DNA from: Andalucia godoyi And28
Lineage: Eukaryota > Protista > Jakobida
NCBI GenBank assembly: GCA_009859145.1
Contig: VRVR01000039.1
Span: 7,909 to 71,908, forward strand
Direction of reading: 5' to 3'
Length of the DNA: 64,000 bases
The notes under the pieces are model-generated. The model was not told where the DNA came from. It saw only the letters and a list, made by a program, of their open reading frames with translations, and did no database searches. Position numbers and translations under genes: made by a program. This document shows positions 16,616 through 35,343 of this stretch, one piece after another. Position 1 is the first letter of the stretch. Every line of letters begins with the position of its first letter.

Positions 16616-17578
16616 ATGAACAGTTCGCGCGGTGAGAGTTCATTTTACGCGTCCAGCGGTCTTCCTCCGCACTTTGCGAGCTCATCGTTGTCGTCGTCGT
16701 CGTCGTCGTCGTCGTCTCATTCGCAGTATTCGCATCATTCGCAACATCAAATGCAACCGCAGCCGCTGAATGTGTCGAATGCGTCTGCTTCGAATCGCCG
16801 GTTTGAGTCGCCAAACCGCGCCAGGATAGCACAGCTGGCAAACAAGCTGAGTGGACTGCAGTCGAACCTCGAGGATGACAAGCAGCATCGTGTGGAAGCG
16901 ATTGAAGCGCGGCTGCGGACGACGGACGATCGGATCAATGCTCTTTTGTCAACTCAGGATAAGCGTCTGTTGCAGATCCGTGACGCAGTGTCACAGGCCG
17001 AGCGCGCTCTTGATGAAGAACGCAGAGCCCGCGAGGTGCTGTCGGAAGCCAAGGGCCGGGATGTTGCGGCCACAGACCTGAGGCTTCAGAGCGAGCTTGA
17101 TGGACTCGTCAAGGTTCGAAAGGAGTCTGAAAACAGAGTTCTTGCGATCTTGGACGATAAGATCCGGTCGCTGGTGATGGAGTTTAGCGCGTCAAACAGC
17201 AGCAGCAGCAGCAACTCGGGTCATCATCACTCTCATCATTCCCATCATGGGGCGACGACGCTATTTGGGGGGGTTGCGTTGGATGCAAGCAGAATCCGAG
17301 AGGCAGTTGCAATGGAAAAGTCAGCGCGCGAAGACGCAGAAAACAAGCTGATCCAGACTATCTCCGCCGAGCTTGCAGAGTTGGCGGAGTTGGCGGAGCA
17401 GGAACGCAGAACTCGCGAGCGGGCAGAGGACGCGCTGGTGCGGATGTTGCAGGATGCTGGAAACAGACTTGTTAGCGAGCTCGACGCGGAAAAGAGAGAC
17501 AGGCAAGAAACCGAAGAAACATTGCTGGCTCTTTTGGAAGACACGTGCGTCAAGATCAACGAAGCCAACGCCTTTTGA
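16616..17578 (+). CDS. SF-assemblin/beta-giardin family striated-fibre protein, 320 aa
   Basis: Short Ser/Pro-rich head, then a segmented coiled coil ending in RDRQETEETLLALLEDTCVKI, typical of SF-assemblins. Confidence 0.88.
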   Translation: MNSSRGESSFYASSGLPPHFASSSLSSSSSSSSSHSQYSHHSQHQMQPQPLNVSNASASNRRFESPNRARIAQLANKLSGLQSNLEDDKQHRVEAIEARLRTTDDRINALLSTQDKRLLQIRDAVSQAERALDEERRAREVLSEAKGRDVAATDLRLQSELDGLVKVRKESENRVLAILDDKIRSLVMEFSASNSSSSSNSGHHHSHHSHHGATTLFGGVALDASRIREAVAMEKSAREDAENKLIQTISAELAELAELAEQERRTRERAEDALVRMLQDAGNRLVSELDAEKRDRQETEETLLALLEDTCVKINEANAF

Positions 17579-20186: not shown

Positions 20187-20503
20187 TCTCCATGCCCGCA
20201 CGACTGACCTCGTTTCTCCTTGTGTCCGAGCGTTTTTCTTCCCTTTTCCTTTCCTTTTCCTTTTCCATCATCATCTTTTTCTTTTTTTCTTTTTCTTTTT
20301 CTTTTTCTTTTTTTCTTTTTTTTTTTTTTTTTGGGATGAAATAGATGATGAAGAGCAGCAGCTTGAGCTTGCTTCCTTTCCTTTCCTTTCCTTTCCTTTC
20401 CTTTCCTTCTTTTTACGCAGTAAAGTCGCTCGTCTTTGTCTACAGTCGCTCCCTCAATGTCGTGCAAATGCATGAGACAATTCTCTTCGCCATTCACTCG
20501 GAT

Positions 20504-21247: not shown

Positions 21248-21418
21248 CCACAAACTCAGCTTGTGCCGCTGTCCCAAACAACAAACAACAAACAACAAAC
21301 AACAAGCAACAAACAAGAATGATAAAATTGGACTCAAAAACGATTCCGGCAATTTTCTGCAACTCTTTGAAGCATTTTATCAAGCAGATTTTATTTATTT
21401 ATTTATTGTTATTAATTT

Positions 21419-21503
21419 TTTTGTTTTGTTTTGTTTTGTTTTGGTTTGTTTTGTTTTGTTTTGTTTTGCTTTGCTTTGCTTTGTTTTGTGTTGTTTTGTG
21501 TTG
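21419..21503. repeat. Degenerate (TTTTG)n / (CTTTG)n microsatellite
   Basis: Directly visible upstream of Sen2. Confidence 0.9.
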
Positions 21504-21887
21504 TCTTGAATGCTTCATCTTTTCTTGCTTTTCGTGACATGATGGTGCAGGTGGTGAAAAGGCTGATGTGCCATTCCGATGTGCACGACACCATTGTGAA
21601 CTGAAGTGACGTGGCGCGGGCGCACTTCCTACTGAAACCATCATCTTTTTTGTACGTTGCGGTCTCTGGTACCAGGAAGCGTCTGTTCGTCGGACGTTTG
21701 CACGAAGAACTTCCGTATTCCTTGCATTTACGTATTTAAATAGGTGAGCCTTCAAGAAAAGGAGCATGCGCGTGCAGCACGACGTCAATTGCAGCAGAAA
21801 CGAGCGGGAACAAACTGTCGGATGTGACGTTTGGACCTTGGCAGTGCGTCCCATTTGCGCCCAGCGGGTGCAGTGCGGCGCGGTGCT

Positions 21888-24800
21888 TTAGGACTTGATG
21901 CAAAAGAGGACAAATACGCCTTGGAAAATGTCGGAAGCTGCAAATGCAATGTCCAGGGTCGGAAGATTCACCGAGGTTGTTGTGGGAGTGACGCCGTTTC
22001 CGGCGCTGTTGTCCTGTATGTACACGGTCTCTTGGTTTGCGGATGCTCCGAGATTCACAGTTTTGGCAGTGTGTCTGTGCACAATGTCGACGTTCGTGAT
22101 GGTGGACGCGGGGGTCTTCAAGACCCGGCTGTCCGAGGGTGACGAGTTCGGATAGAGCTGCGGCGCTGTGCCCGAGGTGATCGGGTTCGGTACGGCTGGG
22201 TTGCTGTACTGGCCAGGATCGAGGCCCACCGGCACACGGCCGAAAGAATCCGTGAAGGGCGTGTACCCGCTTGGGCACGTGATGCCCTTGTACATGATGA
22301 TCGTTCCTGCAGGTACCAGGTCGTTTCCGCCTTCCCGAACCTTTCCGTTGGCCACATTGAAATTACCAGAGGAGACTGTCACAGAGCTGGAGATAAGGCG
22401 AATGCCGGAGCTCTTGACTTCCACACGTAGAGCGTCTGTCTGGTCGCGTATGGAAGTCGTCGTGGCAGTCAAGCGGATTTCGTTTGTCACTTTCGACCCG
22501 GCTGCAACATCGGATCCCCTGGTCCCAATGACAATTTGTGCAGAAGATCCATTAGTCATCATGTATAAGAGAGAAGAGTGGAAAGCGGTCAGAGATGTCG
22601 ATGAAAAGTCGATGATGTTGAACTGGTTTGCATCCTGAAGGGAAAGCGAGGAGGAACGAAGAAGAATGCTCGACGGATATCCCGCAGACAACGCTGATCT
22701 GGAGCCAACCTCAAATGAACCCGTATTCGCCGTCTCGGGCACGAACTGGACTTTTTGCACCCAAGAAACCCGCAAATTCATGGACCGACAGTTGATGAGC
22801 GACGCGAAGAATGGATCGGATGTGAGAGTGGTCATGGATCCTATGGAAATTTCCGAAGCCGCTGCTTGTGCAATGACAGAAAATACAGAAATGGAGGACA
22901 AGGGTGCCGTGATCTTCGTAGAAGCAGCCTCCACGGTTAGCCCCCCGTCTCCGGCCACCCCAGTACCAGGTCGCAACAGAATCGGTCCACCGACTCCGGA
23001 CGATCCTGATGCTGTTCCGCCAAGAATCGACACCTGACCGCCAGTCGCCTGCGAGACTTGCTGCCCTGCAATGGTTAGCGTCTTTCCCGCAACGGCGGAC
23101 GTAGACGTCGGTGGAAGCTTGATTGTCGCGGCGGACTGCGCAGACCCAACCAAGATGACATTGTCTCCGGACGACGAGAAAATGGAAAAGGTCGGCGTGT
23201 CCCAAGATGTAGAGGGGGAGACAGCCTGAATTGAACCAGGGTTCACAAGAAACCAAGAGGAGCTCGTCTCCAGCTTGATCATCGAGCTGTTCACCGACAG
23301 TTTGTTGGCAGAGCTGCTTTCTGTTACAGTGAATGACGACTTGGTGCTCAAAGAAATGTCGCTGCCAAACCCAATACTGGAAGCACCTGAATAGAGTGAG
23401 AGCTTCAGGTTGTTGGCGGTCAGTTGAAGCGACGCTAGCGGGTGGACAGCAATCGATGGAGAAGACATGTCGATGGACATGTTCCCCGATGCCGATTGGA
23501 TTGTACTGTTTCCCTCCAGAAGGATTCCTGCGGCGGAGTGCAGAGCGAGATAGCCATCTGTCGATTTGATTCGCAGAGAGTCTGTTCCAGCGGACGACAG
23601 CATGGTTCTGTTGAAATCAATGCTGAGCGTTCTGCCGGACACAATCCCAGAACTTCCATTCACCTTCAGCAAGCCAGCGACACTCTGCCCAATCTGCACG
23701 GTCGATGCACCCAGAACGCTGAGTCCTTGCGCCGGAACAAGAATGAGACTTCCGGGGGTCATGAGGACGCCTGTTGCGGTGTCCAGCATCAGACCGGATT
23801 CAGCATTCCACAACCATGGGCTGCTTCCTGCCAGCCGCACACCGGATTTCGATGTGTTGAGGATCACTCCAGGAGCCACTATCGAGACATTATTCAGTTC
23901 CTCGACCAACGACGCTGTTGCGAAGTTGAATTGGAATGTGTGGCTCGTGAGCATTGAGGAGGTCGCTCTCAGCGAGCCACTTTGGGAAGGATTACCAACG
24001 ACAAGAAGAGAGCTGGATTCGTGGTACACTACAACGCCCTGCGCAGCACTGAGTTGAAGGACAGACGAAATGGTGCTAATCCTGCCATTTTCTGCGAAAA
24101 TATACATATTGGATGAAGAAATGTTCTGTGCGGCATTCAGCAGCCGGATTGACTGCGTGCGGTCGGCGATCGAAAACGTGACCCCTTGCGTTGTGGCCGA
24201 AATATTCACAGACCCGGCTGCCGAGAGAAACAGAGACGCTTGTGTAGTCCAGGACGACCGCTGCAGATCAATGGCGGAAGTGGCGGAAGTTATTTTTGCA
24301 GAGTCTCCGACAACAGAAAAGTCGCTGCCAACAGACAGTAAACCCGCCCCGAGGAGACGAACATGCGCGGAGGAGTTTCTGACCACGAAATTGAGATCCC
24401 CGACAACCGTCTGCAGTGTGTTATTGGAGAAATGGATGGACACATCAGACAGCGTCCCGGTCGTGGGACTCTTTCCTCGAACTGCGTAGTCGGATCCAAC
24501 AAGCAGATCCCCAACGGGATTGGTAATGTACTGCACCTCGATCTTGCTGACCTTGATCCGCGAGTCGCGGAAGTTGATGGACAGGGAAGGGCTGTCCATG
24601 GACTGACTTGACGCATTAACCACCAAGTAGGACAGGAAGCAGTCAGTGGTCGCAACTTGCGACGGACAAAAGGCCATGGCCACCGGGACCCTGGCGGACC
24701 TGTTTGCATTCAAAAGAATATCACCTTCCGTGGACAGCAAAACCGACGGCACTGTATGGTCGTCAAGGAACTTGAGTGCCGAGCCGGTTACAAGCGACAC

Positions 24801-26582
24801 GTGGCTGTATCCCGTCGTATTGGAGGACAGTAGTGAGGTGCCGAGCGCGATCTGCGTGTCTGCAGACATTTCCATTCCTTTTTCATAAATTTTTGTGAAG
24901 GAGTGCGGATTCCGGCCTCCATCGGCAGCGAAACGGAGAAAAGACGAAGAGTACAGCGCAACTCCGTCGAACGTCAGAGTTCCGGATGCGTTGAATGCGA
25001 CCCTTTTCGGAGAAGACGCGATGCTGAACAAAATCATTTCTTGCTCCGATATGCTCATTCGGAACGCCTGCTGGAAGGTGATCGAGGAATTGGCCATTCC
25101 GAATACCGACAGCTGCAGACTGCTGGGCGATGCAATGGAGAAGCTCTTGGTTGTGAACACTGTGGAATTCGGAGTCATCTGCAGGAGCGAATAAAGCAGC
25201 GAGGAATGGTCCAAGCGAAGAACGTGATTCTCCAGATCTGCCTGAATCATAAAGTTCGTCGTCGTCGGCACCGACGGAAAATGTGCATGAGAGGCGCCAA
25301 GAATGATGCTTGGTTGGGAGGACGATATCAAGACAGTCTGCGGAGCGGAGCTCAGGGACCCGTTGCCCACGACAAAAGCTGCTGATACGGCGCCTGCGAT
25401 GCACATGCCGGCTCTTTCGTGACCTGTCTGACACCCGGGCAACACCACGACATTTGACGTCGAAGACAAGGAAAGCTGGCGCTGCGACGTGATGCTGCAA
25501 TTTCGACTCGACAAGAACGCGAACGCGTCCGCCCGAACGACCACTCCGCCACGCGCAGCATTGACGTGCAGCGGACCCGTGTGGTTCTCTGTGGTTTCCA
25601 AGAAATTCAGCTTGAATACTGCCGAGTCGTTTCTCGACACGACAGACTCTGCTTCCAGGACAATCGAGTTTCTTGTGGAGATCTGAAGCCCAGAGGCAAA
25701 TGCAAAAGAGTACGGCTCCGCAATGGCGATGGACATAAAGGCGCTGCGGGAGATGTTTAGATTTGCGGATGCGATCCACGAGTCCGCGATGGTGAAGCCG
25801 TTGGCAACGAGCGTTGCCGGCTCTCTGGTCGTCATTGTGATTCCTTTTGCCACGGACAGCACAGTGTGTCTGTCTTGAACGATGGTCAGGGCACCCTCCG
25901 TGAACCTCAGAGTGGACAGTTCTCCAACGGATGTCGAATGAGTGGAAACAAACGTTTCCGAGGTTAGTGTTTGTGTGTTCAGCAAGCCGTACACCGCACT
26001 CGACGTGCTTCCCATTCGCAGAACGAGTGCACCACCGTGAAGAACATCGAAGGTGTTCCTCAGCTTTCTCAAAGTAGTGTTGTGTGTCTCGTCTGCAAAC
26101 ACAAGACGGGTGCCGCCGAACGGAGACGACATGGAAACGAAGGTCTGGCCCTGTGGATTCGACACGGCAAGAGTCCTTGCAGAAATCGACTTTGATGCGA
26201 CCGAAGCGATGTCCAGATTTTGCCAGTCGGTTCCGAAAATACAGACATACACATACGCAAGTGCACCAACGACGATCCAGCACATGATAATGTGAGCCAC
26301 TAAAAGGGCAAACTTCTTATCGATCCTCTTGAATATCGGTCTTCGTCGCGGCAACGGAACCCCGTTAAACAGGACTTCCACATTCTCCGGGAACTCTTCC
26401 GTCTGCTTCTGTGCATAAAGCCGGTTTTCCTGCTCTTCCGTGTCCAGCGGGGGAAGGTGCTGCTGCTGGATCGCAGAGCCTGGAGGCCGAATCGGCACCA
26501 GTGTCTTGCGAGGAGGCTGCATCCCCACCGTAACCGCAGCAACCGATGAAAAATTGTGAGACCGCGGAGATGCCGTCATCAT
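21888..26582 (-). CDS. Giant type II membrane protein A, 1564 aa, with beta-rich stalk and C-terminal phage tail-collar-like domain
   Basis: Uninterrupted ORF. One TM helix near residues 92-117, many N-x-S/T sequons, one GG-x-h-x-h-x-x-G repeat module, C-terminal PAGTIIMYKGITCPSGY...GRVPVG, an HRH motif and terminal FVLFCIKS. Confidence 0.88.
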   Translation of the reverse strand: MMTASPRSHNFSSVAAVTVGMQPPRKTLVPIRPPGSAIQQQHLPPLDTEEQENRLYAQKQTEEFPENVEVLFNGVPLPRRRPIFKRIDKKFALLVAHIIMCWIVVGALAYVYVCIFGTDWQNLDIASVASKSISARTLAVSNPQGQTFVSMSSPFGGTRLVFADETHNTTLRKLRNTFDVLHGGALVLRMGSTSSAVYGLLNTQTLTSETFVSTHSTSVGELSTLRFTEGALTIVQDRHTVLSVAKGITMTTREPATLVANGFTIADSWIASANLNISRSAFMSIAIAEPYSFAFASGLQISTRNSIVLEAESVVSRNDSAVFKLNFLETTENHTGPLHVNAARGGVVVRADAFAFLSSRNCSITSQRQLSLSSTSNVVVLPGCQTGHERAGMCIAGAVSAAFVVGNGSLSSAPQTVLISSSQPSIILGASHAHFPSVPTTTNFMIQADLENHVLRLDHSSLLYSLLQMTPNSTVFTTKSFSIASPSSLQLSVFGMANSSITFQQAFRMSISEQEMILFSIASSPKRVAFNASGTLTFDGVALYSSSFLRFAADGGRNPHSFTKIYEKGMEMSADTQIALGTSLLSSNTTGYSHVSLVTGSALKFLDDHTVPSVLLSTEGDILLNANRSARVPVAMAFCPSQVATTDCFLSYLVVNASSQSMDSPSLSINFRDSRIKVSKIEVQYITNPVGDLLVGSDYAVRGKSPTTGTLSDVSIHFSNNTLQTVVGDLNFVVRNSSAHVRLLGAGLLSVGSDFSVVGDSAKITSATSAIDLQRSSWTTQASLFLSAAGSVNISATTQGVTFSIADRTQSIRLLNAAQNISSSNMYIFAENGRISTISSVLQLSAAQGVVVYHESSSLLVVGNPSQSGSLRATSSMLTSHTFQFNFATASLVEELNNVSIVAPGVILNTSKSGVRLAGSSPWLWNAESGLMLDTATGVLMTPGSLILVPAQGLSVLGASTVQIGQSVAGLLKVNGSSGIVSGRTLSIDFNRTMLSSAGTDSLRIKSTDGYLALHSAAGILLEGNSTIQSASGNMSIDMSSPSIAVHPLASLQLTANNLKLSLYSGASSIGFGSDISLSTKSSFTVTESSSANKLSVNSSMIKLETSSSWFLVNPGSIQAVSPSTSWDTPTFSIFSSSGDNVILVGSAQSAATIKLPPTSTSAVAGKTLTIAGQQVSQATGGQVSILGGTASGSSGVGGPILLRPGTGVAGDGGLTVEAASTKITAPLSSISVFSVIAQAAASEISIGSMTTLTSDPFFASLINCRSMNLRVSWVQKVQFVPETANTGSFEVGSRSALSAGYPSSILLRSSSLSLQDANQFNIIDFSSTSLTAFHSSLLYMMTNGSSAQIVIGTRGSDVAAGSKVTNEIRLTATTTSIRDQTDALRVEVKSSGIRLISSSVTVSSGNFNVANGKVREGGNDLVPAGTIIMYKGITCPSGYTPFTDSFGRVPVGLDPGQYSNPAVPNPITSGTAPQLYPNSSPSDSRVLKTPASTITNVDIVHRHTAKTVNLGASANQETVYIQDNSAGNGVTPTTTSVNLPTLDIAFAASDIFQGVFVLFCIKS

Positions 26583-27345
26583 TGCCGTCGTCGTGTCTTT
26601 TGTGTTCTTGTTTTATTTTTTTTATAATTATTATTATATTTTTTTTGAAATATAAAATAAGCTGAGTGATGAACAACGATATCGGACGAACAAGAGTAGG
26701 CTACGCACCTGCTTCCTTGACGAAGCATGGATCAATCCATTGGAGCGTTTAATGAACTCGACAGAAAAGGCAAATGAAAATGTCTGTTGTAACCCTTCCA
26801 GCATCATTCAGCTTCGCTTGATGGTAGCGGTACTGTAGTTCGGAGACAGTCCGTCCTTTTCAGCTTTACCGTTTCTTTCTTCATTCGTATTTCCGTTTCT
26901 TTTCTTTCATTCCTCTTTTATTTATTATAGTATTTTTCCCCCTTTCTTTCTTTTTCTTCTCAATCAACGGACACTGTTTGCTAGAGCTTTCTGTTCATTT
27001 TCCCATTGCCAAGATAGCGTAGTTTGTGTCCAACATGTAGATTCCTCCCGTTGCGTCAATTGTCTGGTGCCATGTCATTTTTTTAAATGGTATTTCAGCA
27101 CGATGCTCAGAGGTACATCTTGAAACGATACTGTTCTTATGATTTATTTATTTATTTATACTATTATATATATATATATATATATATTAAACGACAGTTA
27201 ACAGTTTTCTTCGTGTTTTTTTCATTTCCTTTTTGAAAAACGTATTTTTGTTATTGTTTTATTTTGGCTTATGATTTTTCAATTTGAAGTACTTTATCAA
27301 ATTGAATATTGAATACGCCCACGATCCACCATGCAAATGGAACGA

Positions 27346-30300
27346 CTACAGTTTGTAGCAGACCAAGAGATATAGTCCAGGAACGATGTTGTGCACCGGC
27401 ACGCCTGTTGTGGATGCAGCGGCCACCGTTGCGCTTGTGGATCCCGAGTAGGATTGCTGCGCAACGGTCTGTGAACCGCCGCCGCAGCAGTTGGAATTGG
27501 GGAGACTCACGCCTCCGTGAGTGTGGCTCAAACTCACGCTAATGGTTTGACCGGGAACGCTGAACGATCTTGTGGTCGAGGATGGGGGAAATGGGAGGCT
27601 GGAGCCCTGCTGGGGACTGTAGTCAGCCCATGCGCCGCTTGTCTGCGTTGGCATTCCAAACACCGCTCGTCCCCGTGCTTCTGTGAGTTCTGCATACCCG
27701 GCTGGACATGCGATTCCTTTGAACATGATGACAGAATTCGCTGGAATTAGGGCATCTCCAGATTCCTTCACCTTCCCCGAAACGAGCAGATCACCAACAA
27801 CACTCACAGCCCCCGAGGTCCCTGCACGAAGCACGTAGTTGGATGATGATATGTCGAGTCGTGCGTTTGTGCTGGCTGCATTGGTGTCCCATATCTGCAC
27901 GCTTGTTCCTCGAATCACCACGGTTTCCGTTCCGCTGGAGGCAGCGTCCGTCGCCGACACTCCGATCTGGATCACGGTGCCAGCTGCCGACGCAGTTTTC
28001 AGGTACATCGAGGTTTGATGGAACAGCAAGGCCTGCGTACTGCGCAGCGCTAGGCCTGATGCTGCCGACGCTGCCGAAAATTCCACACTGGATCCCGTGA
28101 ACGTCATCGTTGGAGCATTCGACGAAGCCCCCACGATGAACATCGGGCTCGCTCCTTCGAACTGAACGGAGACCCGATTCGAACACAAGGTCGTTGTGTT
28201 GCCTCGAAGTTTGATGTAGGACGGATACCTATTCGTGACATTCGTGTCTCCGATCTCAACTGTCGTCTCCACTGCTGGGAACGGCTGCTCCGTAAGCACG
28301 CGAAATAACGTTCCCACAGTTGCTGTGTACGCGTTGGCCCTCGTCATGATTGAGTTCGTGTACGAAGCGTCAACCATGGAAATGCTGGGATTTGAGTTGC
28401 CGATCTCGATACGATCTCCGCCGAACGACTCGGAATCAGACGAATGCACTGCTAGTATTGGATCCGAGTATGCGTGGTTCTGGACAGTCAGCGAATGGGT
28501 TTCCAGCATCGTGCTTCCGACTGTGTTTCCAAGGCCAGTTCGTAGATGGATGGATCCGCCGCGGCCAGAAATGCTGTCGGCAGCGAACAAGCGAATCCAG
28601 CCTCCACCGCTCTGCGACCGCCCCAACCCTGCATACAGATTCAGACTGCCACCCGTTAACGACGCATTGTTGCTGGAGGCCTCGCCAGCTGCGAGTGAAA
28701 TCGATCCGCCGTCTCCGCAGTTTGAGCAAGCAGATTGTCCATAAATCTTTAAATCACTGCCATGTGCGGGACTCACTGACGCCGGCATGGATATTTCAAC
28801 CCCTGCTTGCGTAGGCCCCACTGAGATCAGCAGCGGGTTTGTAGGCACCGACGGTCTAACAATCATTCCTTGTGAACTTGTGAAGACTGAAAAGGTGCCC
28901 GTGGACGTGAGGGCCATGGTCCCCGCATCCAGCCGTACCTCCCCAGTCCTGTTCACACGAAAAGCAACATCATCGATTTCAAGGGACGTCCGCAGCTTCC
29001 TGTCTCGGAAGATCACAGACTGTGCTCGCAGCCGCAGATAGTTCGTGTATGTGGACGCATCAGAAAACTCTCCAATCTCAATGTTGGTGTTTGCAGAAAC
29101 AGTGTCCTCCGTCTTCAGATTTATGGACTGGCCGGCCAATGTCTTAAACGTCGATGCTCGGATGTAAACAAGGTCTGTGTAGTCCGTTGCAGACGGTGAA
29201 ATGGAGGAATTGGTGTTTCCAATCAAAACATGGTCACCTGCGGGATCTGCGTCCATTGTGCCCACAACAAAGAAGGGAGTGAGCTGTGACCAGGAGCGAA
29301 CAGAAAATGCATGTGCGTCAACGAGCACGGAGCCGGTTGAAGAGGGAGAATAAGAGGCGGACGCGCTGCCACCTGCGCGCAAAAGGATTGACCCCCCGGT
29401 GGACGTCGAGGAACTGTCTCCGGCTGATATGGCTACATTTCCGCCAGCGGCATCCCCGAACCCGTTTCCAGCTTCCAGAATGAGCGATCCGCCCGCAGCA
29501 GCAGACTGCAGGGTATGTCCATAACCGGCTCGAACGATAAAATTGCCTCCGTTTCCACAATCAGCGCATGCGGTCTGTCCGGTCAGCACGGTGGACGAAG
29601 CAGCACCCGTGCTCACAGGACGGGAAATCATCGTGGCAGACGTGGACGTTCCCAAGGCCAAGTACGTCGGCAGCGCAGGATCTCGCGACGTAAGGACGTA
29701 GCCCGCAGCACCGGATGTGACGGAAACTTTGTCGGACGAAACAGTCAGCAGCGGGACAGAAATCGAAATCTGGCCCGATCGGTTGAAATCGATTGCAGTG
29801 GTGCTGACTGTTACAGACGGCGTTCCGTTGGCGTCCATCAGCGAAATGTTCCGCGCGCGGATCAGTATGTTTTCCGGGACAAGCGATGACGAAGAAGACT
29901 GCCCAATGACAATGGTCGCATTCGCCGTTTCTGCAATCATGGAAAGGTAAGAAGCTCCTTTCAAGGAGATCACGTTGCCGCGAGCCTCAATCAAGTCCGT
30001 GTAGTCGGGAGAGGAAACTCCAGCAGCCATGTTGCCGATGCGCACTCGGTCTTCACTCTGATTTGCTGTCGAGATATCGAGCAGTGTCGAAGACCGTGTT
30101 GTACTGCGTACGAAAAAGGACTGCGTTAAAATACTGACGTTACCGTCTCGAATCCTCGAAGACGCCGCCATACCACTGGAGATGATGACGTCTCCTCCGT
30201 CCCCTCCGTATCCACCGCCCAGAGTAAAGGCGGCACCTGTCGCTTGCTGGGCGCCCGCTCCGGCTTGCACATAAACACTGCCTCCAGCAGCGGACGCGGA

Positions 30301-33300
30301 AGAACTCGCAGCCGTGGATCCATTTCCTGCGAATATGTGAACATCGCCGCCGGCTCCGCTCAGACTGGACTGACCCAAAATTGCAGTCAGCGACGCCGCC
30401 TGAGAGGTGGAAACCGGTCGGGAATGCGTCACAGAAGCGTTGTCAGACCCCCACTGCACCGTGAGAGAGGCAAGACTGGAAGAAGGGGAAACCGTCAGGC
30501 TCTGTGTGGAAATGTACAAGTCGTTCAGCAGGGACAGGCGCGAGCTAGTGCTGGAGAAAGATATGTTTCCAGACGGAACCCCTGCGAACAGAGACGAATT
30601 GTCTAATCGGAGGAGGGAATTTCCGGCTGCAACAACGACTGCCTTCTCTGTCAGCGTGAGCATAGTCCGCAGTGAACTGCTGAGCAATTGCACAGCATCC
30701 GCTTGAATGTTGACGACTGCTGTTGCATTAGATCCCACGAAAATCTTCGGGGAAAGGAGAGCAATGCTCTTGGAAGCCAACGTCAGGTTCGACGTAGTGA
30801 TGGAGCAGGACGGCGTGTCCATGATCCACGATCCACGATCGATGCGAAAAGACGACATGCTCGCCTCCAGCGCAAACGATTCGGAAGCGACCAAAAGAAT
30901 GCTCGAAGAGGAAAGACGGGTGTCGAGGCCCGAAAAAGAAATGTTCTGACCTGCAAGCGAAACACTAGAAGCATCGTGATCAAGCGTGATGCGAGAGGAG
31001 CCGCGCGGGTCGAAAAAGAAGAGCCCAGAGGAATTCAGAGCAAACCAAGGTGTCAGAAATCTAGTCGCGGAAACACTGAGCACAGTTGAACTGAAGTTAA
31101 TGTTGCCGAGAACGGCGGAATTCGCGTTACCAGCAGAGAGGATAATTGAGCCTGCCGTTTCCGTGGCAGAACTTCCGCCCTGGATACAGACGTCGCCACC
31201 CGTGCCATTGTGCGAGCTTCCTCCCGCGAAATAAAGCGAGCCTCCGCTGCCGCGAACTGAAGCGTTGATGAAGGACCCGGCGGAAAGGAGCATGCGACCT
31301 CCACTTGTGCACTGTGGACAGCTGTCGGCGGCGGAGAGCGAAAACTCGGTGGTGGCGCGCGACACGTCCAAATGCGCCACATGCGAGACCGCAACGCTGC
31401 CGTTGGAAAATCGGCGGACGTCCATCCACACTGTACCGGTGGATGCATCGGAGGCAACCAGAGATTGGGCGCGGAAATTCAAACTCGCGTTTCTTCCGGT
31501 GACGGACGCGTTTTGAAGGTCAAGCACCATCGAGGCTCCGTCCACTTCAAGAGTGTTCCCGTCAAGCACAAGCCCTCCAATATGCAGCTTCCTGGATCCC
31601 TCCAGAAGAAGCGGTTCCGGCGAGGACAGAACAATGCTCCCACGACTTGACAGAAAAGTCGAGTTTTCAAAGCTGATCGACAACGGGGCAAGGCTTCCGG
31701 TTTGGCGACTTCGACCGCATAAACTCCAGTCGGAATCGAGGAATACGTGTCCCTGATGGTTGAACAGGATTCTAGCCGACACGGAGAGAGCGGAAAGCTC
31801 CCCTGATAAAAAGTCAAGGTGGAGGCTGCTGGACGATATCCGAGAATTCGTGTTGTTGACGACAATTGCGGTAGAAATATTCGTGCAGTCGTCCTTGCAG
31901 AACTTCAGTGGGCTGAACACATTGACGGAGTTACTGGCAGACAGTACCATGGTGCCACCGTTCGAAAGCTCGACTGTGGTCAGTCCGGACTCCGACGCTA
32001 CGTATCCGCGACCACCGGATGTCGACAGAATCAAGGTGCGGTTCAAGCGCAATCCACTTGGTGAGAGATGGAGCGTCTCGCTTCCGTTCTGATGGAACCC
32101 GAGTGTCCCGTCCATCGAGACATGTGTTTTGTCAATTCTCAGCAGACCTGAGGCGTCAAAGGCTATCACAGATGCGGGATTCTGCGAATGGAAAAGTGTC
32201 ATCTGTGACCTCACTGCTGACACGGCGAATCCAGATGACATGGACCATTCCACTTCTGCGGCCTCAAAAAAATGCTTCAACCGCGTTGTGTTTGAATTTC
32301 CTGTTCTCAATGTGCTGTTGCAGAAGAAATCTTGACAACGAACCACTGTTTCAGAAAGATCCAGAAAGGGAGAGGATTCGGTTGGACGATGAGATATTCT
32401 CAGACTGGATGGGGACGCACGAAGCACGACGTTCGACGACAAGTAGAATGTGGTGTGCGTGAACCGGATGCCCGCCTCCACAAACGAATCAGAGTCACTG
32501 CGATTTCCGGAGGGTACAAGGAAGTGCGATGATGCATTTCCGAGTACCGCAGAATACGATGCGGAGAACCTCTCCAGAACGGGGCCGTGAAAATCAAACG
32601 TCATCGTTGAGTTTGGAGAGGTGTACGAGAAGGCCGCTGTGGCTGGGAAAACCACGCCTCCTGGAGCAAGTATCTGCAGTGGCGACTGCGGGTCGTCCCA
32701 CAACAGCTTTCGGAAGCTGATGGAATCGATCTGGACGGACGAGCCAGAAAATCGAACGGGGCCATTTCCTCCGTCTATCACTAATCCGGATGCTGCCGAA
32801 AGGGAAACTGGTTCAGAAAGGGAGCTTGATATGGATCTCTCGGACACATTCCAGTTCAAGAAGGTCAGCGTGCGGTCGAAAATCTGGAAACCTTTGAGAC
32901 GCACAGTGGAGAGAACGGTTTGGTCCGTTTCAAACACCATGTCGGTTCCCACGGAGAAAATGATCTTGTTTGATCCGGACACCACAAGCGTTCCATCTGC
33001 AAACACGAGAGAGCTTGTTCGTGTGCTTGGACCCTGTGTCAAGCCGCCGCCCTCAAGCGCGTGCAAGTCCGTTCCAAAAAAGGCAGCAGAAAACGTGGAG
33101 GAAACGTTCAAAACTGAGGATGACAGCGACTTGGACACGACGTCTCCTGGGAAAACAACCCCGTGCGAGGTAGAGCGCATGACGTCCACTCCACCAGACG
33201 AGATTTCGAATCCCGATGCAGCCGTGGAGATCTCGAACTGAGGAACGGTCGCGCCAGTTTGCAACACCAGCGCAGAGGACCCCGCGGCTGAAACAATGTG

Positions 33301-33945
33301 CAAGTCTGACGATCCCGAGGTGGACTGCAGCGTCGCGATCTGATCGGACGATCGGACGATGCTGATTTCTTCCGTGGTGAGCTTCCCTGACGAGATGGAC
33401 TGTGATGCCATCGACTGGAGAGACAGTCTGGATGGTTCGTGTATTTCAGAGACTTTCAGTCCAAGATAGGTGACGAATCCTGCCAGAACCCAAAACGCGA
33501 TCATGTGAACCACTGCCAGTGATTTCCACACACGCCGCTCGATCAGTGCTCGCCGCTCTCTGATCGGTTCTAAATCCACCTCCGGATACAGCGTTTTGAA
33601 GTCTGGAACCAGGAAAAGCGGATTCCCAAACTCTGCGTTCTTCTCTGGATGAGGGGAGGCGGACTGAATCATGTCTTCTGCCGCCCTGCTATCTCCGCCC
33701 TCGGCACGAACGACGCTCGCCAGTGCATACCGCTTCCTGTATTCCTGCTCCTTGTCAAACAGCACTTGCAGGCGCTGTTGCCTCGCCGCATAGTCGTCCA
33801 GCGGCGTCGAAACTGGACTTTGCACCGGCGGGGGATCATTCAGCATCGGCGATGCGCTTCCACCCATCCTGGAAAATCCAATCAACGGAGGAGGAGCCCG
33901 CACTCGGAAGGCTCCTGAGCTGGGTTTTTCTTTTGCTGCGTTCAT
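27346..33945 (-). CDS. Giant type II membrane protein B, 2199 aa, paralogue of protein A with expanded repeat modules
   Basis: Uninterrupted ORF collinear with protein A. One TM helix (SLAVVHMIAFWVLAGFVTYLGL), four Gly-rich modules, C-terminal PANSVIMFKGIACPAGY...GRAVFG, an HTH motif and terminal YLLVCYKL. Confidence 0.88.
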   Translation of the reverse strand: MNAAKEKPSSGAFRVRAPPPLIGFSRMGGSASPMLNDPPPVQSPVSTPLDDYAARQQRLQVLFDKEQEYRKRYALASVVRAEGGDSRAAEDMIQSASPHPEKNAEFGNPLFLVPDFKTLYPEVDLEPIRERRALIERRVWKSLAVVHMIAFWVLAGFVTYLGLKVSEIHEPSRLSLQSMASQSISSGKLTTEEISIVRSSDQIATLQSTSGSSDLHIVSAAGSSALVLQTGATVPQFEISTAASGFEISSGGVDVMRSTSHGVVFPGDVVSKSLSSSVLNVSSTFSAAFFGTDLHALEGGGLTQGPSTRTSSLVFADGTLVVSGSNKIIFSVGTDMVFETDQTVLSTVRLKGFQIFDRTLTFLNWNVSERSISSSLSEPVSLSAASGLVIDGGNGPVRFSGSSVQIDSISFRKLLWDDPQSPLQILAPGGVVFPATAAFSYTSPNSTMTFDFHGPVLERFSASYSAVLGNASSHFLVPSGNRSDSDSFVEAGIRFTHTTFYLSSNVVLRASPSSLRISHRPTESSPFLDLSETVVRCQDFFCNSTLRTGNSNTTRLKHFFEAAEVEWSMSSGFAVSAVRSQMTLFHSQNPASVIAFDASGLLRIDKTHVSMDGTLGFHQNGSETLHLSPSGLRLNRTLILSTSGGRGYVASESGLTTVELSNGGTMVLSASNSVNVFSPLKFCKDDCTNISTAIVVNNTNSRISSSSLHLDFLSGELSALSVSARILFNHQGHVFLDSDWSLCGRSRQTGSLAPLSISFENSTFLSSRGSIVLSSPEPLLLEGSRKLHIGGLVLDGNTLEVDGASMVLDLQNASVTGRNASLNFRAQSLVASDASTGTVWMDVRRFSNGSVAVSHVAHLDVSRATTEFSLSAADSCPQCTSGGRMLLSAGSFINASVRGSGGSLYFAGGSSHNGTGGDVCIQGGSSATETAGSIILSAGNANSAVLGNINFSSTVLSVSATRFLTPWFALNSSGLFFFDPRGSSRITLDHDASSVSLAGQNISFSGLDTRLSSSSILLVASESFALEASMSSFRIDRGSWIMDTPSCSITTSNLTLASKSIALLSPKIFVGSNATAVVNIQADAVQLLSSSLRTMLTLTEKAVVVAAGNSLLRLDNSSLFAGVPSGNISFSSTSSRLSLLNDLYISTQSLTVSPSSSLASLTVQWGSDNASVTHSRPVSTSQAASLTAILGQSSLSGAGGDVHIFAGNGSTAASSSASAAGGSVYVQAGAGAQQATGAAFTLGGGYGGDGGDVIISSGMAASSRIRDGNVSILTQSFFVRSTTRSSTLLDISTANQSEDRVRIGNMAAGVSSPDYTDLIEARGNVISLKGASYLSMIAETANATIVIGQSSSSSLVPENILIRARNISLMDANGTPSVTVSTTAIDFNRSGQISISVPLLTVSSDKVSVTSGAAGYVLTSRDPALPTYLALGTSTSATMISRPVSTGAASSTVLTGQTACADCGNGGNFIVRAGYGHTLQSAAAGGSLILEAGNGFGDAAGGNVAISAGDSSSTSTGGSILLRAGGSASASYSPSSTGSVLVDAHAFSVRSWSQLTPFFVVGTMDADPAGDHVLIGNTNSSISPSATDYTDLVYIRASTFKTLAGQSINLKTEDTVSANTNIEIGEFSDASTYTNYLRLRAQSVIFRDRKLRTSLEIDDVAFRVNRTGEVRLDAGTMALTSTGTFSVFTSSQGMIVRPSVPTNPLLISVGPTQAGVEISMPASVSPAHGSDLKIYGQSACSNCGDGGSISLAAGEASSNNASLTGGSLNLYAGLGRSQSGGGWIRLFAADSISGRGGSIHLRTGLGNTVGSTMLETHSLTVQNHAYSDPILAVHSSDSESFGGDRIEIGNSNPSISMVDASYTNSIMTRANAYTATVGTLFRVLTEQPFPAVETTVEIGDTNVTNRYPSYIKLRGNTTTLCSNRVSVQFEGASPMFIVGASSNAPTMTFTGSSVEFSAASAASGLALRSTQALLFHQTSMYLKTASAAGTVIQIGVSATDAASSGTETVVIRGTSVQIWDTNAASTNARLDISSSNYVLRAGTSGAVSVVGDLLVSGKVKESGDALIPANSVIMFKGIACPAGYAELTEARGRAVFGMPTQTSGAWADYSPQQGSSLPFPPSSTTRSFSVPGQTISVSLSHTHGGVSLPNSNCCGGGSQTVAQQSYSGSTSATVAAASTTGVPVHNIVPGLYLLVCYKL

Positions 33946-34458: not shown

Positions 34459-35079
34459 TTACGAATTCTTGTCAGATACTTTGGTGAAGCTGGAAGCCTG
34501 CATGTGCGCGCGCTCGATTGGGCCTGCGGTTGCAAGATTTTCCAATCGCTTGAAGCAGTCGTCCATTCTCGCAAGCTGGAACTTCACAGACGACAAGTCA
34601 TCCCGAAGCTCAAACACGTCTTGCTTGAGCCGAGTCAGCTGATCGATGTGGTCGTCCTTGCTGGAAGACGACGACATGATGCTTCGGAGCCGCTGCGTTA
34701 CTGACTGCAATTCCAACGCTTTCTCTTTCCTTGCTCTCTCGTTGTGGTTTGGCCAAGTGGTGGCATCATCGGAAGACTGTCCTTTTGCGGTCGTCGTCGT
34801 CGTCGTCGCAGTGGCAGTGGCAGCTGCTGGAAAACTTGGATCCAGCTTCAAAGTGTACTGAACCGGTTCGTCCTTTGGAACCAACAACGGACGGTGAGTG
34901 GAAGTCGGCTTTGAACCGGAAGCTCCCAGCGGCGACACAGGAGTGTACCATGGAACATTCGCGGGCTTGTCGTCCTGCAAATCCTGTGTTGTCAACCGAC
35001 TCGCACGAAATCGCGCAAGGTTCTGCCGAAAATCTTGCAGAAACACGTCAATGTCTTCCGATGTCACTGCGTCTGACAT
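34459..35079 (-). CDS. Hypothetical protein with C-terminal coiled coil, 206 aa
   Basis: ATG at 35079, a Thr/Ala low-complexity linker and heptad segment IDQLTRLKQDVFELRDDLSSVKFQL. Confidence 0.7.
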   Translation of the reverse strand: MSDAVTSEDIDVFLQDFRQNLARFRASRLTTQDLQDDKPANVPWYTPVSPLGASGSKPTSTHRPLLVPKDEPVQYTLKLDPSFPAAATATATTTTTTAKGQSSDDATTWPNHNERARKEKALELQSVTQRLRSIMSSSSSKDDHIDQLTRLKQDVFELRDDLSSVKFQLARMDDCFKRLENLATAGPIERAHMQASSFTKVSDKNS

Positions 35080-35343
35080 CCTCGAGTTTTCCGTAAATAC
35101 AAAACCCACCCAAGGGGTAAACGAGAAAGAAACCAACAAAGACGAAGCAGAAAAAGGATAATAAAGAAATACCGGTATTGATAATTGGTAGCGTCTACAG
35201 TTGACGAAGACCACCCTTTGCCCCCCGGTGTCGACTGTGAATTATCAAAGGAAAGACACAATAGATACAAAGAAATTGGAGTATATAAGCAACATAGTTC
35301 TTCAAAAAGATAAAATACATGATTAAATGAACAAAGGCACATA

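Follow-up and report, generated by a model that had tools for sequence, protein, structure and literature searches.

The 64,000 nucleotides of contig VRVR01000039.1 considered here (positions 7,909 to 71,908 of the forward strand, hereafter the window) come from the jakobid Andalucia godoyi And28 and carry two adjacent genes, p1 and p2, which encode giant proteins of 1564 and 2199 amino acids (aa), predicted to be anchored in the membrane near one end and to bear a phage-tail-fibre-type tip at the other. An initial annotation, made from the sequence alone, had taken them for a tandem pair of intronless, collinear paralogues on the same strand, each with a single transmembrane (TM) helix, and all of this is borne out by the exact coordinates, the gene models and the alignments (Table 1). 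Open reading frames (ORFs) of such length would arise in random sequence with probabilities of ~1e-33 (p1) and ~1e-46 (p2), and the public models P0001 (1544 aa) and P0008 (2173 aa) correspond to the same ORFs without introns. The A. godoyi genome is compact (~20 Mb) and mostly intronless, and the paper describing it makes no mention of these genes (PMC7050145), which the source records label 'hypothetical protein'. The public models begin at internal Met codons (Met21 of p1, Met27 of p2), and an upstream ATG adds 20 codons to p1 and 26 to p2. The p2 stretch between the alternative starts contains 'PPPLIGF', which is like 'LIPFRPPP' of the related protein P0009 and 'LVPIRPPG' of p1 and suggests a conserved cytosolic motif.

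Architecture of p1 and p2

When aligned by BLASTP, p1 aa 23-805 and p2 aa 39-843 share 24% identity (E 3e-18), while p1 aa 1328-1563 and p2 aa 1969-2198 share 29% (E 4e-16). On these alignments the two proteins are collinear but distant paralogues, and their middles differ because p2 contains ~4 copies of a unit of ~275 aa, of which p1 has a single weak copy. Both are rich in Ser (16-17%; Ser+Thr ~25%), and their ectodomains contain 26 (p1) and 37 (p2) N-x-S/T sequons.

The helix of each protein is flanked by 6-7 Lys/Arg on its N-terminal side and 1-2 on its C-terminal side. This arrangement is general among the full-length members of the family, 7/7 of which have a single helix with 5-9 Lys/Arg among the 20 residues that precede it and 0-4 behind it, an N-terminus of 53-217 aa ahead of the helix and a remainder of 1236-2036 aa. 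The helix motif xxH[IMV]hx[FLC]W is kept in p1, p2, P0009, P0011, P0012, P0033 and P0204. A type II (N-in/C-out) topology with the long part extracellular is predicted because the positive-inside rule, applied to the Lys/Arg flanks, gives the same orientation for all seven. The hydrophobic C-terminus could be read as a glycosylphosphatidylinositol signal; this reading was rejected, as the stretch is the conserved terminal strand of the collar, which is also present in soluble bacterial and phage proteins. The helix is followed by a membrane-proximal ectodomain of ~700 aa that has no match in Pfam, PHROG, NCBIfam or the PDB.

The stalk beyond it is characterized by the ~275-aa unit, in which 'GQxACxxCGSGG' is followed by four copies of 'GGxhxhxAG' spaced 16-19 residues apart and then by '…VxhGN…YT…R…TE…TxIxIG…RA…D…RS'. 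The units of p2 are recognizable from one another by BLASTP (unit 2 against the others, E 3e-11 and 5e-8; units 3 and 4, E 2e-22), whereas the p1 copy falls below the threshold of the unit hidden Markov model (HMM). Beside the ~4 copies of p2 and the weak copy of p1, there is 1 in P0009, 2-3 in P0011, 3-4 in P0012, at least 5 in P0010 and 1-2 in P0013 from the jakobid Stygiella. Copy number accounts for most of the length differences among family members, making the stalk length-modular, and the differing fibre lengths supposed at the outset extend from 1 to at least 5 units across the family. A conserved CxxC, contained in the 'GQxACxxCGSGG' segment, opens most of the units (p2 aa 876, 1460 and 1740, at ~31318, 29566 and 28726 of the window) and is absent from p1; in an extracellular protein it could form a disulfide, or serve as a metal site, by which the boundaries of units are marked.

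The AlphaFold2 (AF2) model of p2 unit 3, built on a multiple sequence alignment (MSA) of 13 sequences, has a predicted local distance difference test (pLDDT) score of 73.5 and almost no regular strands by DSSP. The weak Foldseek list obtained with this model is composed of T4 gp34, lambda gpJ, HylP, VgrG, the Mu and R2 spikes and Bdellovibrio Bd1334 (8oml), the last only at a non-significant E of 4-5, and it includes no monomeric beta-helix of the pectate-lyase, pertactin or autotransporter type. With the unit profile, the sole suggestive match among PDB sequences is the gp5/VgrG beta-helix (E 0.056). The best structural matches are accordingly neither monomeric beta-helix enzymes nor members of a known eukaryotic family.

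Table 1. Coordinates of p1, p2 and their parts within the window.
Feature	Residues (aa)	Position	Strand	Remarks
Gene p1	1-1564	21888..26582	(-)	predicted type II membrane fibre protein, 1564 aa; identical product in EukProt; paralogue of p2
p1 N-terminal region, predicted cytosolic	1-90	26313..26582	(-)	Pro-/Arg-rich; 7 K+R in last 20 aa
p1 predicted signal-anchor TM helix	91-111	26250..26312	(-)	FALLVAHIIMCWIVVGALAYV; Kyte-Doolittle maximum 2.5; motif xxH[IMV]hx[FLC]W
p1 membrane-proximal ectodomain	112-810	24153..26249	(-)	collinear with p2 aa 164-850; orphan sequence
p1 single degenerate unit	~1129-1320	22623..23198	(-)	GGQVSILGG; BLASTP to p2 units E 1.9e-5, 1e-4
p1 neck and tip	1401-1564	21891..22382	(-)	neck VTVSSGNFNVANGKVREGGND; A3 HMM 124.5 bits
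p1 collar, N-terminal part	1422-1454	22221-22319	(-)	contains Cys1436
p1 variable insert	1455-1551	H1502-R-H1504 at 22071-22079	(-)	
p1 returning C-terminal strand	1552-1564	21891-21929	(-)	Cys1561, Lys1563
Spacer between p1 and p2		26583..27345	(-)	763 bp, AT-rich; (TA)n run, A-rich tracts; GC 0.47 in block
Gene p2	1-2199	27346..33945	(-)	predicted type II membrane fibre protein, 2199 aa; P0008 scores 992 bits against A2 profile
p2 predicted cytosolic region	1-142	33520-33945	(-)	142 aa; precedes TM helix
p2 predicted signal-anchor TM helix	143-163	33457..33519	(-)	LAVVHMIAFWVLAGFVTYLGL; same helix motif
p2 membrane-proximal ectodomain	164-850	31396..33456	(-)	collinear with p1
p2 unit 1, partial/divergent	861-1111	30613..31365	(-)	CPQC, GGSLYFAGG, GGDVCIQGG; unit HMM E 4e-13
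p2 unit 2	1180-1444	29614..30408	(-)	unit HMM 370 bits
p2 unit 3	1445-1724	28774..29613	(-)	GQTACADCGNGG, then 4x GGxhxhxAG, 'LIGN…YT…R…TE…IEIG'; BLASTP, unit HMM
p2 unit 4	1725-1998	27952..28773	(-)	BLASTP, unit HMM
p2 neck and tip	2047-2199	27349..27807	(-)	neck VSVVGDLLVSGKVKESGDA; A3 HMM 125.8 bits
p2 collar, N-terminal part	2066-2098	27652-27750	(-)	contains Cys2080
p2 insert	2099-2186	S-H-T-H-G-G at 27511-27528	(-)	
p2 C-terminal strand	2187-2199	27349-27387	(-)	Cys2196, Lys2198

The neck and tip and their relatives

The tip at the C-terminus of each protein has a split scaffold comprised of an N-terminal segment, 'P.G.h..F/Y....CP.G[WYF]......GR...G', and an extreme C-terminal segment, '…h.hh.C.K-end', the former summarized as 'CP.G[WY]…RGR..VG'. 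In an alignment of 37 sequences, 'CP.G[WYF]' is invariant at Cys, Pro and Gly and the terminal 'C.K' at Cys and Lys, and the two Cys are also invariant across 40 sequences. An H.H motif is mostly kept among the 37 and occurs in 8/10 tips of the family, as HRH in p1 and HTH in p2. Among paralogue tips, mean pairwise identity is 0.45-0.46 in the collar scaffold versus 0.22 in the insert. The junction at the neck, '…LDVQGGDIN.SGK[VIL][KR]EGGN.L.P', is common to prokaryotic relatives and jakobid tips (p1 VSSGNFNVANGKVREGGNDLVP; P0010 VQGGDLNVASGKVRE), and since a Bdellovibrio fibre of 1195 aa has a Peptidase_S74 domain after this junction in place of the collar tip, it is a natural tip-exchange point.

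The kinship of the tip emerges when 1.84 billion representative proteins are scanned exhaustively by HMMER with a profile derived from p1 and p2 only (the A2 profile, comprising the last stalk unit and the tip). Among the 116 proteins matched at E<=1e-3, ~100 are small prokaryotic proteins that match the tip core alone, with E values down to 9e-15, and nearly all of these prokaryotic matches end at their own C-terminus with 'PY[IVL]QLL.C.K[DNSQ]'. A subset of the matches ends with 'PPYY.L.YIMKL' and scores against the Pfam families PF07484 (Collar) and PF21939 (Gp10_C); P0052, P0060, P0064, P0088 and P0095 (E 6e-6 to 3e-4 in the A2 scan) score one or both. P0088 in turn matches solved three-chain fibres, namely 6ov6 (Bizionia C24; 8e-17), 9qgo (6.5e-13) and 9nxk (phage Pa223 tail fibre; 3.8e-8). 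When the family profile itself is compared with PDB sequences, the sole matches are three phage tail fibres, weak and aligned on the collar motif. The AF2 model of the p2 tip (40-sequence MSA) has a mean pLDDT of 67, with the collar motif and terminal strand above 90. In the PDB, the top Foldseek ranks with this model go to 9nxk, 6ov6, the T4 gp37 tip and T4 gp10-C, and from BFVD it retrieves almost exclusively tail-fibre, tail-collar and Gp10_C proteins (best E 1.2e-3, probability 0.96). The collar of T4 gp37 consists of residues 811-860 and 1016-1026 with the receptor-binding region between them (PMC12724248), and the topology of the p1 and p2 tips, a collar segment, a variable insert and a returning C-terminal strand, appears to be the same.

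The sequence evidence makes a strong case for placing the tip in the tail-collar/Gp10_C superfamily, as a divergent subfamily that no model has covered so far, and the evidence from the fold, though weak, agrees. A C-terminal tip of phage-tail-fibre type, as the initial annotation had it, is upheld by the passage from the A2 profile to collar-bearing proteins and from these to solved three-chain fibres. The comparison of the tip with Pfam and PDB that it had proposed gave a divided outcome: the direct searches failed, the profile and its intermediates succeeded, and Foldseek placed tail fibres first at sub-significant scores. In particular, phmmer searches of the PDB with p1, p2 or their tips found no match, the closest C.K-type relatives have no match in Pfam, P0163 has only a chance-level match in the PDB, and no model of Pfam, NCBIfam or PHROG covers the C.K collar-tip subfamily. 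Word-indexed homologue searches with full-length p1 and with a two-sequence tip alignment matched only the queries themselves, where low-complexity words probably swamp the candidate list.

The C.K variant of the tip is also found on viral contigs of IMG/VR (33-68 kb). One of these, L010, encodes a 205-aa tip protein (7782-8399) after a tape-measure gene and a 1167-aa distal tail gene, and another, L009, encodes a 262-aa tip protein (7680-8468) within a portal/major-head/tail block. With an HMM built from 10 jakobid-type tips only, these phage proteins reach 58.6 and 50.8 bits, where none of 400 shuffles exceeds 6.0; the two scores are equivalent to E 1e-10 and 2e-8 even for a database of 1.8 billion sequences, and hhalign aligns jakobid-type tips with the phage tip proteins at 99.9% probability. 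The nearest relatives of the window tips (e.g. P0014, P0015, P0018 and the L010 and L009 proteins) share 35-56% identity with them over 50-180 aa; for p1 the best BLASTP match outside jakobids is P0015 (45% over 80 aa, E 1e-18).

Most relatives of the tip are cellular, the nearest being mostly surface proteins of uncultivated bacteria and archaea, and among GTDB genomes the tip is spread patchily over Elusimicrobiota, many phyla of the candidate phyla radiation (CPR), DPANN archaea, Omnitrophota, Myxococcota and Bacteriovoracia. It is common in DPANN (Woesearchaeota, Pacearchaeota, Aenigmatarchaeota and Nanoarchaeota) and in CPR (L025-L104). DPANN archaea and CPR bacteria are episymbionts that must attach to host cells. 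On the groundwater contigs L003, L004 and L005 (e.g. L004 64-2880), three C.K-tip paralogues of 267, 335 and 315 aa form a tandem array, each with a signal peptide and a common N-terminal 'YQGFL..G.PVN…F.I' domain that matches no Pfam family and recurs in P0056, P0026 and P0041 of Myxococcota.

The myxococcal tip genes are located in housekeeping contexts or beside type VI secretion system (T6SS) islands. On L006 (Polyangium spumosum WJIE01000013.1, 1-10846), P0180 lies directly downstream of a T6SS island with three VgrG genes, PAAR, a DUF4123 adaptor, an amidase and DUF2169. An overlapping 148-aa ORF precedes P0180, and a similar small ORF lies upstream of P0168 on L007; it may be a chaperone or partner gene. 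On L001 (Archangiaceae JAACJQ010000265.1, 1-8639), the 212-aa P0073, with a coiled-coil-like N-terminal segment and a TM helix, is encoded third, behind the genes for two large proteins of >1925 aa and 866 aa without a Pfam match, an order kept on L002, and this gene group could encode an uncharacterised surface apparatus.

Origin of the family, proposed function and rival explanations

The large proteins matched by the A2 scan are ANDGO_07176, ANDGO_02842 and ANDGO_08282 of Andalucia, transcripts of Stygiella incarcerata and three environmental sequences, and no other eukaryotes occur among the 116 matches. The family includes at least 5 Andalucia paralogues, p1 and p2 among them. Anchor, proximal ectodomain, at least one 275-aa unit and C.K tip are all present in p1, p2, P0009, P0011 and P0012; P0204 of Stygiella and P0033 share anchor and tip with p1 and p2, and P0010 and P0013 share unit and tip with them. 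In a neighbour-joining (NJ) tree of 65 tips, those of jakobids form one clade in the point estimate, with 80% bootstrap for the Stygiella type. The p1 tip scores 59 bits against that of p2 and 71 bits against P0015, such that jakobid tips are as distant from one another as from bacterial ones. The anchor, stalk unit and tip position common to the family nevertheless favour a single founding gene whose descendants diverged fast, with later tip replacement a possible addition.

Relatives are detectable among prokaryotes and phages for the neck and tip only, ~165 aa of 1564 or 2199; anchor, proximal ectodomain (~700 aa) and unit (~275 aa) have been found in no organisms but jakobids. The original proposal that the whole fibre was acquired horizontally must be narrowed for this reason: with stalk and anchor lacking detectable prokaryotic relatives, only the neck and tip can be so described. 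That a tail-collar-type tip was horizontally acquired and is carried on a jakobid-specific anchored stalk is very probable. The donor was a bacterium or a phage, and a phage donor is not required, because the nearest relatives are mostly cellular surface proteins, with phage proteins in addition.

Both genes are native, codon-adapted eukaryotic genes. Their GC content at third codon positions (GC3; 0.59-0.62) and the correlation of their relative synonymous codon usage (RSCU) with that of the neighbours (r = 0.76-0.86) lie inside the neighbours' range, in accord with the domesticated status first assigned to them. The surroundings are likewise as first described, with housekeeping genes throughout the 64 kb: a DHH1/DDX6 helicase, tRNA-intron endonuclease, purple acid phosphatase, CCA-adding enzyme, kinesin, ABCG, PAP2, a DDB1/SF3b-type propeller protein, a HECT ligase, Der1, a mitochondrial carrier and a 4486-aa dynein heavy chain. 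Neither a phage gene nor a third copy of the tip was found in the window. That the genes are an assembly artefact or bacterial contamination on a eukaryotic contig is for practical purposes refuted, for nothing but the prokaryotic affinity of the tip speaks for it, against eukaryotic genes on both sides, GC3 and RSCU within the neighbours' range, intergenic regions of the same AT-rich or polypyrimidine character, and paralogues at other places in the genome and among the transcripts of a second jakobid.

A number of results weigh against a captured tail-collar tip that forms trimeric fibres. Neither p1 nor p2 matches a Pfam family even at E<=1, and run directly against PHROGs and NCBIfam neither they nor their tips reach a model. 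The fold searches with the tip fall below conventional significance (PDB E 0.07, TM-scores 0.2-0.3), although low TM-scores are expected where a monomer model is compared with intertwined trimers, and the p2 tip model is only moderately confident outside the collar. Foldseek with the stalk-unit model gave no significant match (best E 0.87), and no prokaryotic homologue of the stalk was detected. When bacterial and jakobid tips were compared by tblastn with 50,697 deposited phage genomes, no match was found. The tips of P0012 and P0020 lack H.H. The distribution and phylogeny of the tip, proposed earlier as a check, likewise gave a mixed answer, with jakobids joined by patchy prokaryotes and phages and the monophyly of jakobid tips at only 47% NJ bootstrap. 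Finally, the case for a homotrimeric tip rests on relatives, every solved one of which was deposited as three chains.

The proposed mechanism is that the neck and tip were taken from a bacterium or phage before the split of Andalucia and Stygiella and fused to a lineage-specific anchored stalk. The tip would form a homotrimer like its solved relatives and nucleate a trimeric fibre, and the invariant Cys pair (p1 1436-1561; p2 2080-2196) would form a disulfide tying the returning C-terminal strand to the collar. The H.H motifs of gp12 and gp37 bind a metal on the trimer axis; by analogy, H.H in jakobid tips may be a site of this type, in which six His would be ligands to a metal on the three-fold axis. 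The fibre would project tens of nm from the plasma membrane. At ~0.04 nm per residue, a value taken from Bd2133 with 370 residues in 142 Å (PMC10769870), the ectodomains are estimated to reach ~55 nm (p1) and ~80 nm (p2), or more if they are built like T4 fibres, with ~10 nm contributed by each unit, and the 275-aa unit would act as a length ruler. The variable insert would present the ligand-binding surface for glycans or other bacterial surface structures, and paralogues with different tips and lengths would broaden the range of targets bound.

Jakobids are bacterivorous suspension feeders, in which such fibres would serve to capture or retain prey before phagocytosis. Prey capture appears to be the likeliest role because bacterial envelopes are what the characterised tip relatives bind and jakobids live on bacteria, yet prey binding specifically is given a little less than an even chance, and the complete chain, from collar-tipped anchored fibre to bound prey, is evenly balanced. 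A more elaborate scenario, in which an andalucinid ancestor captured the tip and built from it a multigene family of trimeric, length-adjustable prey-recognition fibres whose tips and lengths set which bacteria can be caught, is doubtful.

With the same anatomy and origin, the proteins might instead function as a coat or glycocalyx, in attachment to a substrate, to other cells (mating, aggregation) or to a flagellar structure, the tip being a lectin for the cell's own or environmental glycans. The Ser/Thr-rich ectodomains with their many N-x-S/T sequons are like those of mucin-type coat proteins, and many tip relatives belong to non-predatory episymbiotic CPR and DPANN organisms, in which attachment to a partner cell is plausible. 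Such a function is nonetheless somewhat unlikely, given that all characterised relatives of the tip bind bacterial envelopes, namely the phage tail fibres and a virophage collar protein that binds the lipopolysaccharide of Synechococcus (PMC12724248), and that multiple paralogues with fast-diverging inserts fit varied external targets better than one self ligand.

A further alternative makes the stalk a single-chain beta-solenoid adhesin and the tip a monomeric, lectin-like cap, with the likeness to trimeric fibres confined to the collar motif. The 16-19-residue spacing of GGxhxhxAG is compatible with the coils of such a solenoid, and the AF2 monomer models reach pLDDT values of 67-74 without partners, but the near absence of regular strands by DSSP is typical of chains whose strands need partner chains. 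The weak Foldseek list of the unit, moreover, holds trimeric fibres and spikes in place of monomeric beta-helices, and the solved tip relatives are three-chain entries throughout, making this explanation improbable.

It is more improbable still that the genes are remnants of an integrated protist virus (giant virus, virophage or polinton-like). Collar proteins do exist in a giant virus (Fadolivirus) and in virophages, and yet there is no viral gene in the 64 kb, codon usage is native, the TM anchor and stalk are conserved between Andalucia and Stygiella, the family is transcribed in Stygiella, and the tip variant with paired Cys and terminal C.K is the prokaryotic and phage one; this explanation is largely refuted.

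Other features of the window lie beside these genes. A 320-aa ORF at 16616-17578 (+) has a sub-threshold SF-assemblin/beta-giardin match (27.3 bits against a cut-off of 30.6) and may encode a cytoskeletal protein belonging to striated fibres in the flagellar apparatus. Between p2 and the purple acid phosphatase gene, a 251-aa ORF (34459-35214, (-)) with a Thr/Ala-rich stretch and a C-terminal coiled-coil-like segment matches no Pfam family. Polypyrimidine, (TTCCT)7, (CAAACAA)6, (TTTTG)18 and (TA)n tracts occupy the spacers at 20274-20408, 21275-21316, 21419-21508 and 27170-27200, and such intergenic runs may be regulatory or merely a compositional trait of A. godoyi spacers. Intronless genes and polypyrimidine tracts might also point to a kinetoplastid, a reading set aside because the relatives belong to Andalucia and Stygiella. 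Rfam has no matches in the window, and the window proteins that were looked up are all singletons at 90% identity.

The molecular basis by which heterotrophic flagellates recognize and hold bacterial prey is largely unknown, and p1 and p2 are the first concrete, testable candidates for it. The tip is a small domain, probably stabilised by a disulfide, that can be expressed alone for binding tests. In the literature searched, neither these genes nor any collar-tipped protein of a protist is described, and no candidate prey receptor for jakobids appears. The family attests a clear and ancient transfer in which a receptor-binding module passed from a bacterium or phage to a eukaryote, where it was fused to an anchored stalk of eukaryotic invention, and it draws attention to a widespread, unmodelled subfamily of collar tips carried by CPR bacteria, DPANN archaea, Elusimicrobiota, Myxococcota and their phages. 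Were prey binding confirmed, a prey receptor would for the first time be defined in molecular terms in an excavate suspension feeder; should the function be that of a coat or attachment, the evolutionary point stands and the ecological interest falls.

Comparison with known systems

Several named systems were considered and set aside. Readings of p1 and p2 as mastigonemes (EGF), polycystins (PKD/REJ), named-domain mucins or trimeric autotransporters (YadA) find no counterpart among Pfam families at E<=1; together with the absence of PDB sequence matches for the ectodomain and unit, this agrees with the initial annotation, which could place the proteins in no named eukaryotic family. They are not virion components of a phage tail, as the window holds eukaryotic housekeeping genes only, nor are they S74-terminated fibres, as PF13884 has no Pfam match in either and both C-termini are the collar strand '…C.K'. 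A eukaryotic precedent for a domesticated trimerisation module is MYRF, a single-pass membrane protein with an S74 intramolecular-chaperone domain derived from a phage tailspike. It differs in having S74 and not a collar, in the self-cleavage that releases a transcription factor and in its unrelated lineages, with no sequence relationship found. MYRF is also mentioned in an account of Bdellovibrio fibres (PMC10769870).

The tail-collar tips of gp10, gp12 and gp37 type (6ov6, 9nxk, 9qgo, 2xgf and 2fkk) share with the jakobid tips the core motif L.P.G.h..F/W.....P.GW…GR..VG, what appears to be the split collar with a returning C-terminal strand, an H.H in the insert and the position at the distal end of a long fibre. 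In the jakobid tips, however, the classical 'CDG.NGTPDL' loop is shortened to ~6 residues and a Cys pair (CP.GW … C.K-end) replaces 'AP.GW … IMK-end'; p1 and p2 fall below the thresholds of Pfam, PHROG and NCBIfam, and they are predicted type II membrane proteins of a eukaryote and not parts of a virion. The C.K-terminal proteins of prokaryotes and phages are closer, with the same 'GK[VIL][KR]E.G..L.P' neck, invariant Cys pair and terminal position. They differ in being small (160-600 aa), in having a signal peptide or a phage context and usually several H.H motifs, and in often forming tandem arrays or lying next to T6SS islands; the anchor, proximal ectodomain and 275-aa unit of the jakobid proteins are absent from all of them.

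The mosaic adhesive trimer (MAT) fibres of Bdellovibrio (PMC10769870) are alike in concept, as beta-rich stalks on a predator's surface with exchangeable, phage-like C-terminal tips by which prey surfaces are recognized, and multiple paralogues, and the S74-terminated Bdellovibrio fibre even has the pre-tip junction (…LDVQGGDIN.SG) in common with jakobid tips. Membership of the MAT family was rejected, since the ~130-aa beta-rich N-terminal domain of MAT proteins (NF053851) has no match at E<=0.1 in p1, p2 or P0009, whose N-terminus is a predicted cytosolic region and TM anchor. The jakobid proteins are predicted to be anchored by this helix in place of a signal peptide and N-terminal domain, have no S74 and belong to a eukaryotic host, and among the six MAT tips described there is no collar domain, a term absent from that account (PMC10769870). 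The tip is of a known domain class; novelty lies in the architecture found in a eukaryote, in the 275-aa unit of length and in the C.K subfamily. If the proteins are indeed prey fibres, they would be a eukaryotic counterpart, independently reached, of phage tail fibres and Bdellovibrio MAT fibres, and predators in three domains of the biosphere would have converged on the same solution.

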